Below the pieces are notes generated by a model, which did not search any database, was not told the DNA's origin, and saw only the letters and a program-made list of their open reading frames with translations. From Zancudomyces culisetae HAW-14-8 (lineage: Eukaryota > Fungi > Kickxellomycota), in assembly GCA_052426225.1 (NCBI GenBank), contig JBNJNM010000015.1:1488001-1552000 (forward strand): DNA of 64,000 nt. Direction: 5' to 3'. The translations under genes were made by a program, and so were the position numbers. Positions 36,152 to 46,000 of the stretch are shown piece after piece (within the stretch, counting starts at the first letter, position 1; every line of letters begins with the position of its first letter).

Positions 36152-37201
36152 ATGTTGTTAACTAAGAGCAGATTTGTGGTAAACAATGGTGGAAAGTACA
36201 TTTCGGCACGATGTTTGGCGATATTGAGCAAAAACCAAACACAAGTTCCACAAATACAATCGCTACTGAAACAATTAGCATTTGCCAAGCAGCAACACAT
36301 AAGAAAATACTCTACCGTATTGAATGGTACTGTTGGCAGATCGATGTTGGCAGAACCAAAAATTGTAGTTGCATTGAATACGATTAACGATTTACCAGGA
36401 TCTAAAAAAAAGGTAATACATCTCCCCCTCCTCCCTCCTTCTCCTCCTCTTCTACATCATCTTTATATTTTCTACTATCTTTCCTTCTCCATTCACAAAA
36501 AAAAATTTTTTTTCTACTCCATTTACTTGTTTTTGGTTGTACTTGACCTTTCTACGTTGGCTATACATGAATATATACTAAATACGTATACATGTATGTA
36601 TGTATTTACATATAAATAGAAGAAGAGACTTGGTAGAGGACCAGGGTCGGGAAAAGGAAAGACCAGTGGAAAGGGTCACAAGGGTCAAAATAGTAGAACA
36701 GGAAACCGTAAAATGACACCAGGCTTTGAGGGAGGACAAACGCCAATACACAAACGATACCCAAAGCGTGGGTTCAAAAACGCACTGTTTAAACGTGAAT
36801 TAGAACCACTAAACATCGATAAGCTACAACATTTCATTGATAATGGGCGAATAGATCCAAAAAAGCCAATTACACTCAAGGAGCTGTTTGACTGCAAAAT
36901 TGTTCGTTTCTCAACAAGAACAATGGGTAGTGGTTGCGGTGTAAGCCTGCTTGCGGGCGGTTCAGAGCGGTTCAAATCAGTAGTTGATATACACGTTACA
37001 AAGGCATCAAAGGCTGCGATAGCCCGGATTGAGGAGCTTGGCGGGAAAGTTACCTGTGTTTATCACAATCGGTTGGCACTAAAGGCTCTCCTCAAACCCG
37101 AAAAGTTTATCGCTATTCCTAAATTTGCTGAACCCACAAACGCTAAATTAAGGTCTTGGTATGCCAATCCTGAAAATAGAGGTTATCTTTCCAAACTATA
37201 A
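36152..37201 (+). CDS. MRPL15: Mitochondrial ribosomal protein uL15m (YmL10/MRPL15)
   Basis: Intron 36413..36619. The spliced protein has KRLGRGPGSGKGKTSGKGHKGQ...GFEGGQTP. Confidence 0.96.
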
Positions 37202-37729: not shown

Positions 37730-40009
37730 TTAAAATGCATCTTCAAATAACTCAAAGTGGTTCCCTCGTGGTTTAAAATGCACGGATACATGTGGAACAC
37801 TAGAACCAATTGCTTTTCCGGCGTAGAATCTATTTCCTGTAATTGAATGAAGCATTAGGCGATTGTTTTTGTTAGCGGTACTCCTTCCTGGTAGGATTTC
37901 GTATTTTCTGACCAACAAAACTATAACCATTTTGGTTAGCGCCAAGCTATATTCCTGAGCAAAATGTACATTTGATCCATAAATCCACATAAGGTTGTTG
38001 TGGAATTCATCTACAAGGCCAGAATCTAGGCCTAGTTGTCGGTGGTAATCAAACTCAAACAGTGAGGATCCAAACACGTCATTAAACCGGTTATGAGTAT
38101 AAGTGTTAAAATATACGTATTGGTCTTTTGGTATTGTAACGCCATTTGACAAGACTACTTTCTTGTTGGTGTATCTTTGTGTATTTGCTATTTACATTTA
38201 AAAAATATCGTAATATATCAGTATATTGCATCCACAAAATGTTATAGAACCCTAAACTGTGCTATGTTCGTAACTCAATAAGACGATAATCACGTTGGTT
38301 GGACTTACCATAATTCGTAGATAACCTAACAGATTCTTTAATAACTGCGTCTAAAATAGGCATTTTCTCTAAAGTTGCCAAGTTAATACTGTAGCCGTGC
38401 TCGCTCACTACCTTGTGTTGCTCCTCTTTAAGATCCCTATACACACCGTCCCTAATCGAGATATCTATTAACACTGTGTATATCATTGATGTTACAAGTT
38501 TTATCGCCAGACTTATCGAAAGCAAAATCGAGTCACAAATTGCATTTTTGTTGTTCATGTCAAATTTGTCTGTGTTTTCAATCATATACTGAACCGAATC
38601 CCGTGGTGAATCGTATTCAGGATATATCTCTCGCCTTTTTATTTCGTATCGCACATATTTTTCGAATATTTTTCTCTGAATAAACTTTCGTGTCCACATG
38701 AATGGGTATAGCGTCATTAATTTCTTAATATAAAATCCGTTTCCTCTCTGCTCTGAATTAACATCGGATACAATACCACGAATAGAATCTTTTAGTTCCT
38801 TGTTTAAAAGTACAACCTATGTTTACCAAATTTATAAATTTATATCAACTACCAAATTATAAAATTCTATGCTTCAAGATGCTTATAATAACACCATCCA
38901 CGCTCTTTATTCTCCTACCTTTCCCAAAAACCTGTGTGAAACTGCATTGACTAAAAAGTGCTGGATAAACGAATTTAAATTTACAACCGAAAATCCTAAT
39001 CCACTTTTAAACCCATAGGTTCTAACCGCCTTGTCGATATCCACTTCCACTACAGAACTGCAAACCTCGATAGATTCTGATAAATCCACCAAGTAAGTAA
39101 ATTGCGATAGTTCCTTTATGTTCTCTGAGTCAAATTTCTCGTTTCCAAGCATCGCTGTATAACTTGAAAACTCCTACAGGTAAACAATAAATATCAGTGT
39201 TAGCACACTCCATCTCCGCACATACACGCTAATAACCTTTTTCTTTATATTGATTTTTTTCTACGTAATTATTACCTGTATACTTGACTTTAATCTACTA
39301 AATACATTTTCAGGAAATGAATAATACTCGTTAAAAAATCTTCCCCCAACTAAAAAGTGATCGTTCCCTTTGGCTGCTTTTACCACTTGGTTATTCTATT
39401 TGTGTATTGTTAAAAATAATAACTTAGATATCTGTATCGCATTAACATACCACAAACCTCGACTAGTAACTGTAACTTACTATAGTGTCCAGCAACTCGT
39501 AGTTCGACACTTCTACTGAATATTCACTACTTTTTAGCACCGGTGGGTCTATGTCCTATTTTTGGGGAGATAAACATCACAGTATTGTTAAATAAATCTG
39601 TCGCATCTATTAACTCTATCCTCCTTTACCGCTTCTCACCTCACTTTCTCTGATAATACTAATGTACTACACTACTGAATGAGCTATCGTTAAATAAAAT
39701 AATAATTACCCGCAGGCCATATGAAATCGCGAGTTCTTTGATAGACTCCTTCATTATTAAGGTTATGAATCTGCATATCACCGCTACCTTAACCAGATAC
39801 AAGGATTTGTCAAATATTCTTTCTATACTGTTCTCATTGTCTATAATTAGACTCTTTATTTGTCTCAGCACATATAGCAATAGAAATGAAAGAGTAACTC
39901 CACACACAGTACTTCTGTATTCAAGTATCATTTTCATGCATTTAGCTATCCTTGAGTATCCTCGAGAATGAAGAAACCTCCATTTGAAAGCTTCCGTAGG
40001 TGTCACCAT
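37730..40009 (-). CDS. Cytochrome P450-fold protein (571 aa) with His in place of the axial Cys
   Basis: Exons 40009..39710, 39555..39481, 39395..39276, 39173..38919, 38816..38309 and 38187..37730 splice without stops. Motifs: LKEEQ..V, KMPILDAVIKESVRL (ExxR), LSNGVTIPKD, FDYHR (PERF-like) and heme-loop equivalent WIYGSNVHFAQEYS. Confidence 0.85.
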
Positions 40010-43000
40010 ACCAATTTTTTTTAATGCTACTTTTTCCTCGTTTTATATATGTATTAAACTATTTTTGTAGTATCGGAGGAGGAAAATTGACGATTCGGGT
40101 CTTTTCTGATATCAGAATCTTTGTATAAACCACCCTTCTCTACTCCTATTCTAGCTTAATTTATTGAGCTGTGGAACTGATTTGTCAGAAAATTCGCATT
40201 TATGATTCTTCTTCGCCGTCCTATTTACTATTGCGACGAATAAATACTGTTTTCATTAGAGAAATACTGTTATTCTCATTAATAGCACCGCTTTATATCA
40301 ATATTAGTCGAATAAAATCCGTGCCTTTTTTTTTGGTTAGAAGGTTGGCTCTACCAAATATCAGTGTTTATGTATTATAATGTTGATTTAGTGATAGATC
40401 TCGCTTTTTCTAAGATTATCTATCCTTTATACACAAGCTTAGACACTCTTAAACTCTTATATTATAAAATGTATTGAACTGTGCAGGTATTTTTTCTAAT
40501 TTTTTTTTCTAGTTTTATGTCTATATCCACAATTATATCACACCGAGGATTTATTTTGACAAAAAATTAGGAATTTTGGTTTTTTATGTTGCCATGCAAT
40601 TTTGCAGAAATACAAAAAATAAATCACAAACACTTGTCTAATCTCACAAATTCCCGTTATTCTTGAATTACAAGTGCAAACTAGTGAATAAAAGCGCAAA
40701 ACAGTAAAAAAAAAAAAAAGTTTTGCCAATGTGATATACTGTTTCTCCCCAGTCTTTTCTATATTTTTTTTTGGAATCAAACCCAAAATCTAAGTGTTCT
40801 CAGACACCATACTTATCATAATAACTACAAAACGTTACCGGATATTGAATTTTTAAAAAAACCGAAAATACAAAAAAAATCCTATATATGATGATGCCAC
40901 ATAACTCAGAAGTTCTAATGTAACAGTAATATTCGAAGATGTGGAGGGAATGGAGACATATATTTGAGATTATCACTTTACAAAATACTCTAGAAATAGT
41001 GGTAAATGTGTAAACCGCCAATTCCATATATGTCCAGTTATATGCCTCATGCAATTTTATTGTTCTCACTTGGCAGCTTTTGAAAAAAACGGGTCATTCT
41101 ATTTTCATTTTATCCCCCACTCACCCCACTCACCCCACTCGGGTCACTCAGTTCAATCAGTTATGATATTTTCACTTTTTCATATGCGTAAATCTTGTAT
41201 TTTATTTTATTTTATTTTTGTGCACCATCATGAAGTCTAAAAATGGTACTTTGACACTATTCACGACTGTTCTATTTTCTTTTCTGGTTATATACTTGAT
41301 TACAAAAATTCCCACCAACAATGCGTTCAAGTGTGTTCAAACTATTTACGCCTCATGAATTATTAAGGCTAAAAATATAAAAGAACAAAGATCTTTTTCC
41401 GATGATTAACCAATTCCAAAGATTATTACTCCTCACCAAAATCTCTTATTTCAAATATTCCACCTCATCTTACCTCTACTTTTTATTTTTAGCGTCTTAC
41501 CTTTTTTGATCTACCTAAGCAGCTCATCTCCGTTTATTTCCTCCATTAATTCTAACTTTTCTTCAGTTTTGCATGACGTACAAAAAAAAAAAAGATTACA
41601 ACACCGTAGTATTCAGGTAGATTCATCTTTAGTAGAACTGCCACTGATTGGCCTCACTGTTTTATTCTGGATCTCGCTACATCACGCTTTTAAAAAAAAT
41701 TATCCACTCTTCATTTACTAATTAGCTAATTAATTTACCATAGAAGAAATGAAAATCTATGAAAGAATTTACCTGGAAAAAAGTTGAAAACAAGTGAAAA
41801 GACCACAGATACGCTTTCATTTAAAACGTTCCTATTGCTCAGCAAAAGCAAAATAACCACTTCAAGCTGTTTTGAAATTAAAATTAAGGGTGCACACCAG
41901 CATATACAGAAAACGCGCATACGCCTTATCCGGGCCACAGATGTCAACCCAGCCAACTTTTAGTACACATAATACGTTAATATGCAAAGTGGTCATGGTA
42001 AACCATGGTTTATGACTTAACCTTTGCTCAAAGAATCCTGGAGTATGTTAACGCGTTCAAGGCTGGGTTCTTACCACAACCCACGGGGTTTAAGGTTATT
42101 TTTTTGCTCACATTGAATGGAAGTAGCTTACAAAAATGTAGGAGGTGTGTAAATTATTTTTTTGTTGGTGGAACGGGTGTATTTGATTATATTAGGCCTC
42201 ACAATGCGTTTTCCCTTTTTTTTACCCCAAAGTTACGCATTCTAATAATTGTATGCTCGGGAATCGAGAGCAGTGATCTACCAGACAAGAAAGTGATATA
42301 ACGGATTACCCATCATATGTATATTCTGAACTGGAAGTATGAAACCTTTCAAACAAATGAGTGTAAATGATTATTGGTCACCTTTACATTCCCATTTACG
42401 TTCCTCATCTTTCTATCATCCCACCCCCACTATTTACATTCAAACATCAAGAGTTAAAAAAGCATATACAGTACTGGTTAGATTGAAAAGTAAATCGCAC
42501 GCCTTATTGATATAAACTCTCGAGAATAGTCGGATTACTATAACTTTAGGCTGACAAGTAATTTAACTCCTTTTTTCAGATAACGACCACTTCTATTTTG
42601 AGACCTTGAGTGCATCTAATAAGATACCTTAAACAGACATGAAATACAATGTTTTCTCTGCTTATATATGTATAGGAACAATGCTGACTGGATATCAACT
42701 GAGTCAATTTTCGTTCACAGGTATTCTCATTATTGTTGGTACTACGATTTACGCTGCTTTGAGCAAATGAAACAATACCTACTCCTTTTTACCAAGAGAT
42801 ACATTTCGCTTGTTTTAGTGGGTACATACTGCACCTCATCATGCTCACATCCAAATTGGTTAAAGTTATTGACAATTTGCCATTATTTTTTTAATTCTCA
42901 AGGATTTTACAAAAAAATTACTAGATTATTTCTATTTTTTTTACTATTTATCATTTTAATTTTTATAAAACTCTATTATAATTTGCCCTTCCCATATCCT

Positions 43001-46000
43001 GTTTAACCCTGTTTAGACAAATAGTAAAGGCCTGTTTTTAAATTTTGGCATTTTTTATTATTTTTTGTCTAAAATATTGTTGATTCAAAAAGGGGTGGTT
43101 GCTAACCAAACAAGTCAGCAAATGCAAACGAAGCCAAATTTAGAGGTTCTAAAGAATAAATTGACGTTCTAGACTCATTTTGCATTTTTTTTTATTCAAA
43201 AATTTTGTTTTTCGTAGGTTACTAAAAACTAACATTCATTACCCTTTTTTTACTTTTCGTTACATCATTTTTTTAAAAAATAATGAATAAGATGGGTCCA
43301 TCAATTGGAAACTCATAAATCTGCGGGAAAAAATTATGGGATTTTATGAAAATTTTCAAATCGGCCTAAAGGAACCTGACTTTATTTTCTAGAGCAACAA
43401 ATGGTTTAGTAATGTTTGTGTTGGTTCTTCCCGAAATATACCTGCGCTTCTCTTTAATTCATTAATAAATCTTTGCAAAACTTTTGCAACAGCTAAACTC
43501 ATTCCTGTCCCTCAGAAGCTTAGGTGTTTTAGTGCTACCATCCGACTTTAAGGCATTAAAATAGTAAAGGTTTTCTAGTGGTATTTGCAACAAAATACGA
43601 ACATTAAAGTTGAAATATATTTTCATTATTGTTAGAACCTTAGCAATAGTAAATACCCATGTTAATACAGGGAAACTGATTGTGTACACCAGCCGAAATG
43701 CATATAATTTTTTATCCACACTTTCTCAAACTTCCAGACATCGAGAAAAGAGTAACATGCTTAGGTGGCCGTCTTTATCAGAACAGATGACTTTTTTTGG
43801 GGTGAGATATCTCCGAGTATAACCTTACCAGTACAAACATAGTATATATTATACCTTATTTTCACTTTTCTTCGACTCGTATAATAGTCATTTCTGCCAC
43901 AATTTACGTTTGCCATTCCTGTATTATACTTTTAAATCATTTGAAACCCAGATTCTATTAAATCAGTATAGTATGGTAACCAATTATGACATATTTCGGG
44001 AAGAAAATGTTCTATTTACAATATCAAACGGATTTATACAAGACTTTCAAATCTAATTAATAGTTAGAATTTTATTCTGATATAAGGATGTCTTTAAACA
44101 TCTTTTACCGCTTGTTAAAACTACACAAAAAGTATCATTGTATCGGTAAATTTGCGCGCGCTAAGGTTGGTAAAAAAGTTGATAAAAAAGGGAAACCAAT
44201 ATTTATTAATTTTCTCTTATTTTTATTCCGAGTCATTCCCTTGTACACGTAAGCTCATAACTCTATAGCAAAGAAATGCGCCAGTATGGTTTGAATGTCA
44301 CTATGATGATGACAAGTGTGTAGGGTGACTGTAACTGCAGTTGTAACAGTGATGATAATGATAATGATAACGATGATAAAAATAAAAATAAGAATATTTG
44401 CAAAACCATAGGTAACCTCATCTAAACCACATTTTAGAACCTGTGCCAGGACCAAGATGTATACTGTCATTACTATTCAGACTTCACCAAAAATTGACGC
44501 CAATTCTTTCAAACTTTTACCCCTTGGCTTTTTTTGGACTATGTATTTACCAGCAGTTTTGTTCAACTTTGACCCAAACTGTAAATGCTATACAAATACG
44601 TAAGGTTCGGAAAAATGGGTGGGTTTAAAGAGATTTAATAAAACCGTACGTATAATCAAAAAACCGAATCTAGGTTCATCACAATAGCACACAAATCGAA
44701 CCTAATGCACAGATAATTACATAACTTTATATTTGATTAACAGTGTGCATTTTTGTTTGCATAGTGACAGAGATGGTTGAGTATGCTAAAGATTAGCCTA
44801 TTTTTATTGCACATTTTCAGGCTGTTCGTAGTGTCCTATGTAATTGGTTGGGAATGTATGCTTTTCTTCAAAGGGTGGGAAGGGTAAGACTCAAAGTCTT
44901 TTATTAATGAGGCCTAAAATTTAGTTTTTACTTGTTGGTATTTAAGGTCCGCTTAGTCCAAAGCGATTTTTTGTTTTTGGGGAGTCTTCCTTCACATTTT
45001 ATATGTAATAATTTGGGTTAGGAATGTGTGATAGCCAAGTAAAGATTTTCTAGCACATTTCCCTTTACGAAACCACAGATAACCATAACCAGCACTGATT
45101 GTTTTGCAACAATTTCGGAAAAAGTGGAATGTTTTAAAAGGCTTCCGCCTAGTCGTGGGGAGGATATTTTAAACATATACTATTCTAGATATGGTGTGTA
45201 AATCGAAGGCCGTATAATATGGAATATGCGTGATTCTGAAGAGTTTGAATTCAAGTTGCTGGAATGTATAGTACATAACTGGTAAAAGATATACATAGTT
45301 TTTTGTAGAGCTCGGTTATAAAACACCAATTATAGTGTAAGTTTCGTACACAGGAAAGGTAAAATATCCCACAAAGTTTGATAAAAGACAATGTCAAGTA
45401 GTGAGCAAATACAGTTGAATAAGTCTTTTGAAAAAAAGATAAATATATATAAATATAAATATATACTTAAACATATTTAGTTGTCACACAACTCTCCAGG
45501 TATCTGAACTGTGAATGCTTCTCGCTTTGCATTGACTTTTATATGTATAAGATACCTCTCCTTAACGGGTTGTAAATATTTATTACAGTAACTTGTCCTG
45601 AGAATCATGTTTACATCGAAAATAACCAATATGTAAACTGTGCAACTATCATTATTGAGGTTGTAATGGCAGACCTCATACCATAATAGTTTTTTAGTAT
45701 TATTATTACTATTATTGTATTTCTTTGTTTTATATTTTGAAATGGGGCTGAAAAATGATAATACTATTTATCGGCTGATTCGATCCATTTTCTTTTTAAA
45801 CCAAATGAAAGCCAGTTAATAAGAAAATAGAGCAACTATATATTTCATACAGTTTACCCATCTTGGATTGTGTAATTTTTGGATTTTTCAAACATTAATA
45901 GTATTTAACTTGTTGCTGGTGTTTACGGTATGCAAGATTACAGAAAAAAAGCTGGTGATACTACTTTTCACTTATCCACTACCTTTATCTGAGCCAGAAA

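Follow-up and report, generated by a model that had tools for sequence, protein, structure and literature searches.

A P450-fold gene of the mosquito-gut fungus Zancudomyces culisetae with histidine aligned to the axial heme-ligand cysteine

Introduction

The axial Cys is treated as the defining residue of cytochromes P450, and according to established P450 chemistry the thiolate ligand is needed for oxygen activation. Zancudomyces culisetae, a gut fungus of mosquito larvae, carries a P450-like gene in which this position is occupied by His. The gene lies at positions 37730-40009 of a 64,000-nucleotide (nt) stretch of DNA from strain HAW-14-8 (assembly GCA_052426225.1, contig JBNJNM010000015.1, positions 1,488,001 to 1,552,000 of the forward strand). 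This whole stretch is called the window and its numbering is used throughout; the gene is referred to as the His gene. An earlier note on this DNA, made by a model from the letters of the sequence alone, had proposed an intact P450-fold gene with a natural replacement of the ligand Cys by His, which might encode either a His-ligated hemoprotein or a heme-free pseudo-enzyme under selection.

Results

The His gene is a six-exon open reading frame (ORF) on the minus strand, running from 40009 to 37730, with 1698 nt of coding sequence that comprise 565 codons and the stop. The intact six-exon frame is therefore as the earlier note had described it, and only its length of 571 amino acids (aa) has to be corrected, a small counting difference. 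The exons and introns are listed in the order of transcription; the paralogs mentioned are those found elsewhere in the same genome.

39710..40009, minus strand: exon 1, codons 1-100 (300 nt), with the start ATG at 40009-40007; residues 82-100 align with the paralogs
39556..39709, minus strand: intron 1, 154 nt
39481..39555, minus strand: exon 2, codons 101-125 (75 nt)
39396..39480, minus strand: intron 2, 85 nt
39276..39395, minus strand: exon 3, codons 126-165 (120 nt), aligned with the paralogs
39174..39275, minus strand: intron 3, 102 nt
38919..39173, minus strand: exon 4, codons 166-250, with its donor after the ...FLGK codons
38799..38918, minus strand: intron 4, 120 nt, holding 4 substitutions between the two strains compared below
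38309..38798, minus strand: exon 5, codons 251-413 and base 1 of codon 414, with the I-helix region and the K-helix ExxR
38188..38308, minus strand: intron 5, 121 nt, phase 1, GTAAGT..TAG
37730..38187, minus strand: exon 6, the remainder of codon 414 to the stop, with the SNG strand, the FDYHR meander, the heme loop and the L helix

All five introns have GT..AG ends and contain an in-frame stop within 17 codons, and the G+C content of each (0.275-0.318) is below that of every exon (0.325-0.427). With the base composition of the window, the chance of a random open frame of 565 codons is ~1e-18, and the codon-position G+C of the His gene equals that of the paralogs. Exon 1 encodes a hydrophobic, membrane-anchor-like stretch at about residues 38-56, and the predicted protein is probably full-length and membrane-anchored. 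Every motif that had been quoted for this gene was located in the translation where it had been placed.

38513-38487, minus strand: SLAIKLVTS of the I helix
38339-38322, minus strand: KESVRL, which contains the K-helix ExxR as E-S-V-R
38152-38126, minus strand: LSNGVTIPK
38053-38039, minus strand: FDYHR meander, aligned with the family
37958..37987, minus strand: heme (Cys-pocket) loop WIYGSNVHFA, placed by family alignment
37964..37966, minus strand: CAT codon of His488 at the axial-ligand position, placed by family alignment; two base changes from TGT/TGC
37933-37895, minus strand: L-helix string

Profile and homolog searches with the His gene were made exon by exon. The Pfam P450 profile PF00067 matches exon 5 with 36.1 bits (E 4.3e-9, cut-off 22.8); paralogs score 82-101 bits on the same profile (E 9e-29 and 6e-23), and exon 6 matches the paralogs of its own genome at E ~1e-22. 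Exons 1 and 3-6 are collinear, in order, with 560-aa paralogs, and the 25-aa exon 2 has no match. Both the ExxR and the meander (PERF-like) Arg are kept and align with their counterparts in the family. From the meander to the end of the L helix, the His gene aligns without gaps with own-genome paralogs and nine proteins of other Harpellales. Of the 19 family sequences in this alignment, the HAW-14-8 gene alone carries His in the ligand column, the other 18 having Cys there, in a register that is bounded by an invariant Trp at -7 and an invariant Lys at +11; an Arg at +19 is invariant too. In a search of the PDB, the paralog loop W-G-A-G-N-R-V-C-L-A aligned with the heme-ligand loop of CYP24A1, F-G-I-G-K-R-M-C-I-G. 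The corresponding loop of the His gene keeps Trp -7, Gly -4 and Ala +2, and differs from the family by Gly/Ser to Ile at -6, Arg to Asn at -2 and Cys to His at 0. The axial Cys of the heme-thiolate loop F/W-x-x-G-x-R-x-C-x-G/A is absent from the gene in both strains.

We considered the possibility that this residue is instead the common Arg/His two positions before Cys, which would make Ala the residue in the ligand column. The family alignment, with no gaps in this region, excludes this arrangement, and the placement of His at the Cys position given in the earlier note is correct. Paralog L020 had appeared as a second Cys-less copy, a false pattern match, since the alignment shows Cys.

Conservation elsewhere in exons 5 and 6 was scored on columns that are conserved in at least 80% of the other clade members. 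All 11 such columns of exon 5 and 9 of the 12 in exon 6 are kept in the His gene (20 of 23 in total), and its misses are Cys to His, Ala to Val and Ile to Val, the last two being conservative. Cys-bearing members score 0.56-1.00 on the same test. Each of the two exons is on average 30% identical to the family, whose members range from 25 to 38%.

The I-helix acid-alcohol pair is absent from the His gene, with Lys and Leu at the aligned positions. The I-helix string and the loss of the pair had both been read correctly from the sequence; the loss, however, is a trait of the clade and is not specific to this gene. The acid-alcohol motif is conserved in no branch of the Harpellales P450 clade, though clade members keep Cys, and the whole clade may, to judge from its sequences, perform chemistry without the usual proton relay.

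Up to E 10, a PDB sequence search with exon 6 matched none of the solved chains, among them EryCII, a Cys-less P450 homolog. AlphaFold2 applied to exon 6 alone (19-row alignment) gave a poor model, with a predicted local distance difference test score (pLDDT) of 58 and a predicted template modeling score (pTM) of 0.30, in which a helix at 75-92 directly follows exon residue His74, where the L helix should lie. A Foldseek search of the PDB with this poor model gave no match at E <= 0.001; the weak top rows are mostly P450s and are not counted as evidence.

Exon 6 found 13 matches among 1.84 billion representative proteins, and all ten that were looked up belong to Harpellales: Z. culisetae, Smittium simulii, S. 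angustum, S. megazygosporum and Furculomyces boomerangus. By sequence, the His gene is a member of a Harpellales-only P450 clade. Several of the Z. culisetae database proteins match paralogs of the HAW-14-8 genome almost exactly; in this genome a six-frame search revealed 28 further copies, or ~29 in all, on contigs C6-C21 (for example, loci L002-L021). These 28 paralogs are uninterrupted ORFs, mostly of 553-658 codons with one of 379, and show 30-46% identity to exon 6 and 26-38% to exon 5. The His gene is the only intron-bearing copy of the family in this genome, and the Smittium-clade relatives all have introns.

The intron positions of the His gene recur in those relatives. Exons 1-3 of the S. 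simulii gene P0008 measure 300, 75 and 120 nt, exactly as in the His gene, and the S. angustum gene P0009 shares four of its five intron positions. Both boundaries of exon 3 coincide with P0009, the donor of exon 4 coincides with P0009 and P0004, and intron 5, a phase-1 intron nine codons after ExxR, is common in position and phase to P0004, P0008, P0009 and P0012. The S. angustum and F. boomerangus genes agree with the His gene at all of these boundaries. Because independent Smittium-clade annotations match these positions, they support the exon model, and the sharing of intron positions with that clade shows that the form with introns is the ancestral one. An origin as retrocopies or gene-sized duplications fits the copies that have no introns, and on sequence grounds the family looks like the product of a retrocopy-driven expansion of one clade. 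Thirteen intronless paralogs form a young group with ~1.93 kilobases (kb) in common (the gene and short flanks) at 84-88% nucleotide identity.

Four Smittium-clade genes carry the first half of the heme loop (...NLxWGxG) on a conserved micro-exon of 33-39 nt between two introns, the second of which falls 2-3 residues before the ligand Cys. The His gene has neither intron.

L022:11816-11854: heme-loop micro-exon of a Smittium-clade gene
L024:4809-4847: heme-loop micro-exon of a Smittium-clade gene
L025:5213-5251: heme-loop micro-exon of a Smittium-clade gene
L026:5145-5177: heme-loop micro-exon of a Smittium-clade gene

In a tree built from exon 5, the His gene stands beside P0009/P0015 (the S. 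angustum/F. boomerangus protein), with a Shimodaira-Hasegawa-like approximate likelihood ratio test (SH-aLRT) value of 93. The exon-6 tree does not place it beside these two genes and is unresolved at this point, with long branches. We do not claim one-to-one orthology. A homolog search with P0009 returned P0009 only, and the P0009 locus has no neighbors in common with the window. Orthologs of the mitochondrial L15 gene, which neighbors the His gene, have no P450 nearby, annotated or unannotated, in three Smittium-clade genomes. Synteny is thus not conserved, and no positional ortholog can be named. The earlier note had suggested looking for His in orthologs of related species, and here the outcome went against its proposal: every sampled relative, including the Smittium-clade genes that share the introns, keeps Cys.

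A second copy of the locus is available from strain COL-18-3, in which contig LSSK01000164.1 (L028) of a 2016 Illumina assembly was reached through a neighboring 866-aa ORF. This contig spans window positions 23000-45597, and the His gene at 37730-40009 corresponds to L028:14753-17032. Over 22.6 kb, HAW-14-8 and COL-18-3 differ by 203 substitutions (0.9%) and 36 insertion-deletion (indel) events, a divergence that would also be enough for genome-wide constraint tests on other loci. The two strains share the CAT codon and show no difference anywhere in the heme loop or at any of the ten splice dinucleotides. A sequencing error at the ligand codon had been judged unlikely from the two base changes it would require, and the same CAT in an independent assembly of another strain confirms that judgment. 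It also indicates that the His state predates the split of strains that are ~1% apart. The differences at the locus between HAW-14-8 and COL-18-3 are as follows.

Exons of the His gene, 1698 nt: 4 substitutions, 0 indels
Introns of the His gene, 582 nt: 9 substitutions, 1 indel
Pooled nearby non-coding DNA, 8739 nt including the introns: 0.0113 substitutions per site, 0.0023 indel events per site

Substitutions are significantly rarer in the exons than in the introns (Fisher p = 0.0011) and than in pooled non-coding DNA (p = 1.4e-4), and the corresponding values after clustered changes are collapsed into events are 0.022 and 0.005. At the local non-coding rate, ~19 exon substitutions would be expected where 4 were seen, and ~3.9 indels where none was seen (p = 0.02). 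The rate of nonsynonymous substitution per site (dN) in the His gene, 0.0030, equals that of the Cys-bearing paralog L019 between the same strains (dN 0.0030; synonymous rate, dS, 0.0166), and is close to the dN of neighboring genes (0.0026 and 0.0048). With the non-coding rate as the neutral yardstick, changes at nonsynonymous sites are depleted ~3.8-fold (P = 8e-4). All four exon differences are nonsynonymous and fall in poorly conserved stretches, at codons 83, 96, 472 and 518. Together, these results show signs of purifying constraint on the exons, whose sequence has stayed conserved since HAW-14-8 and COL-18-3 diverged. The depletion of substitutions and indels relative to introns and nearby non-coding DNA fits the suggestion that the gene is under selection.

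Discussion

Like canonical eukaryotic microsomal P450s (PF00067) and its Cys-bearing paralogs, to which it is 28-47% identical at the amino acid level, the His protein has the usual length, an N-terminal hydrophobic anchor, ExxR, the meander, the Trp/Phe-x-x-Gly loop scaffold and the L helix. It differs from both in its axial His and therefore cannot be a heme-thiolate protein. In a survey of ~200,000 P450 homologs, Cys was axial in >99.5% (Nguy et al. 2024, bioRxiv, PMC11703216). It lists as exceptions 301 activators that are heme-free and, from bacteria, 880 non-canonical CYPs (ncCYPs) in 20 families. For these ncCYPs, Glu, Arg, Ser, selenocysteine, a hydrophobic residue or no residue at all is given as the putative ligand, and heme binding by way of Ser or selenocysteine has been demonstrated for some of them; as far as its main text goes, the survey mentions neither a His family nor a eukaryotic case (PMC11703216). 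The ncCYPs are bacterial and each of their families is conserved across many genomes, whereas the His gene is fungal and known so far from one species. An ncCYP is recognized by an alternative residue that is conserved across its homolog family, and the His gene falls short of this, since His at this position is found in two strains of a single species. The glycosyltransferase activators EryCII, DesVIII and AknT are homologs of P450s without the heme-ligand Cys that have been kept for a non-catalytic role (PMC3391682). These bacterial, heme-free proteins are without the C/C' helices and parts of G/H and are encoded beside their glycosyltransferase (PMC3391682). In contrast, the His protein is collinear with its paralogs over its full length, exon 6 has no EryCII-like similarity, and the nearest neighbors of the gene are the mitochondrial L15 gene and FG-nucleoporin-like ORFs.

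Two other proteins invite comparison. An engineered P450 BM3 (Wang et al. 2014, cited in PMC11036407) carries the same axial Cys-to-His swap; His is said to ligate its heme, and oxygenase chemistry to give way to carbene transfer. That protein is a laboratory mutant of a bacterial enzyme, whereas the His gene is natural, and the mutant indicates that His ligation is chemically possible in the P450 fold. PpoC of the fungus Aspergillus nidulans (Brodhun et al. 2010, listed in PMC4727417) is said to retain a P450 domain without the Cys ligand and to have 'only one active haem'. Unlike the His gene, this domain is the C-terminal part of a dioxygenase fusion and its replacement residue is not His.

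We think it fairly likely that the locus encodes a maintained, non-thiolate, non-monooxygenase P450-fold protein of Z. culisetae in which His488 has taken the place of the proximal Cys. The depletion of changes in the exons, the dN equal to that of a Cys-bearing paralog and the same CAT codon in two strains make the gene look maintained rather than decaying. Without a thiolate the protein cannot activate oxygen in the manner of a P450, and we infer that it is not a monooxygenase, a role that would presumably be left to the ~28 intronless Cys-bearing paralogs.

Several observations weigh against this view. No His-bearing homolog from another species was found among the sampled relatives, so that His is known from one species. 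Exon 6 alone reaches 12 bits on PF00067, below the cut-off of 22.8, and its match ends before the heme loop; the profile check proposed in the earlier note is thus positive for exon 5 and falls short for exon 6 taken by itself. Ile at -6 and Asn at -2 could weaken heme binding. The 2016 annotation of COL-18-3, which was made without RNA data, calls no gene at the locus. Finally, the two strains show 0 synonymous differences in ~360 sites (P about 0.017), which leaves the classical dN/dS ratio undefined, and a 4:0 split of nonsynonymous to synonymous changes, taken alone, fits relaxed constraint at the protein level. The missing synonymous changes, set beside introns that differ by 1.5% and a paralog dS of 0.017, may reflect chance (P about 0.02) or nucleotide-level constraint.

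Some of these observations would also be expected of a young pseudogene or unexpressed relic that lost its Cys recently and has not yet acquired stops or frameshifts. The 4:0 split and the missing gene call are compatible with such a history, as is the presence of Cys in all relatives, and gene death is expected in a family as large as this one, with ~29 copies. We nevertheless consider it unlikely, because the exons have about a fifth of the substitutions predicted at the non-coding rate (4 against ~19) and none of the ~3.9 indels, and because nonsynonymous divergence is the same as in the Cys-bearing paralog. The change from Cys to His takes two base changes, yet neither the frame nor any of the ten splice dinucleotides is damaged and 20 of 23 conserved columns are kept, and His is older than the split of the strains. 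The earlier note had named Cys in orthologs together with neutral evolution among the results that would refute its proposal; Cys in the relatives was seen, and neutral evolution was not. It is very improbable that the His loop is an artefact of the gene model, with another last exon or splice pattern supplying a canonical Cys loop. Such an arrangement is suggested by the weak Pfam score of exon 6 and by the two extra introns around the heme loop of Smittium-clade genes, but between the SNG strand and the end of the L helix exon 6 runs in frame alongside the paralogs without a break. Moreover, a six-frame scan of the whole window yielded no other Cys-loop-like exon, with one chance string in an unrelated gene, and the own-genome search gave one exon-6-like match in the window.

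A different question is whether a maintained protein would bind heme at all. The fold could have been kept as a scaffold, as a lipid or sterol binder or as a protein partner, in which case His488 would not be a ligand. We see this heme-free pseudo-enzyme, a sub-case of the maintained gene, as a serious contender that is about as likely as His ligation. Natural Cys-less P450 homologs include the heme-free chaperones EryCII and DesVIII (PMC3391682; PMC11703216), and both the Ile at -6 and Asn at -2 and the end of the PF00067 match short of the heme loop would suit a protein that has given up its heme. However, no helices are missing as they are in EryCII, since the His protein follows its paralogs over the whole length, and exon 6 resembles no solved chain, that of EryCII included. 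The protein also keeps ExxR, the meander Arg and, within the loop, Trp -7, Gly -4 and Ala +2, and the Arg at -2 varies in Cys-bearing clade members as well.

If the maintained protein does function, its heme pocket may still be in use with His488 as the iron ligand, a proposal to which we give somewhat less than an even chance. We favor a pocket still in use because the protein retains its complete fold, a hydrophobic segment at the N terminus, ExxR together with the meander, and half of the heme loop. The product would then be a His-ligated hemoprotein resembling globins or peroxidases, fit for binding a ligand or gas, for peroxide chemistry or for electron transfer and not for hydroxylation. 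The most far-reaching version of this proposal, which we put forward as a doubtful possibility, is that the gene encodes the first natural His-ligated P450-fold hemoprotein and the first eukaryotic non-canonical CYP. The ancestral intron-bearing copy would have changed its axial ligand and turned to non-oxygenase heme chemistry or sensing, while Cys paralogs, probably retrocopied, would keep the thiolate role. Were heme bound through His, the protein would be a natural version of the ligand swap that engineers introduced for carbene transfer, and a ready-made scaffold and test case for tuning P450 reactivity through the proximal ligand. Were it heme-free, the bacterial chaperones derived from P450s would have a parallel among eukaryotes. 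In both cases, the gene is a concrete, clonable candidate.

Neighboring genes

One further gene was delimited next to the His gene.

36152-37201, plus strand: mitochondrial ribosomal protein L15/YmL10 gene in two ORFs (PF00828, E 2e-17), convergent with the P450 gene

The second ORF of the L15 gene is 100% identical in COL-18-3. The annotation of that strain has no gene from L15 to the end of the compared stretch, including window positions 40010-45597 (L028:17033-22601). This interval, which lies upstream of the P450 gene, diverges by 1.06% between the strains, as does other non-coding DNA.

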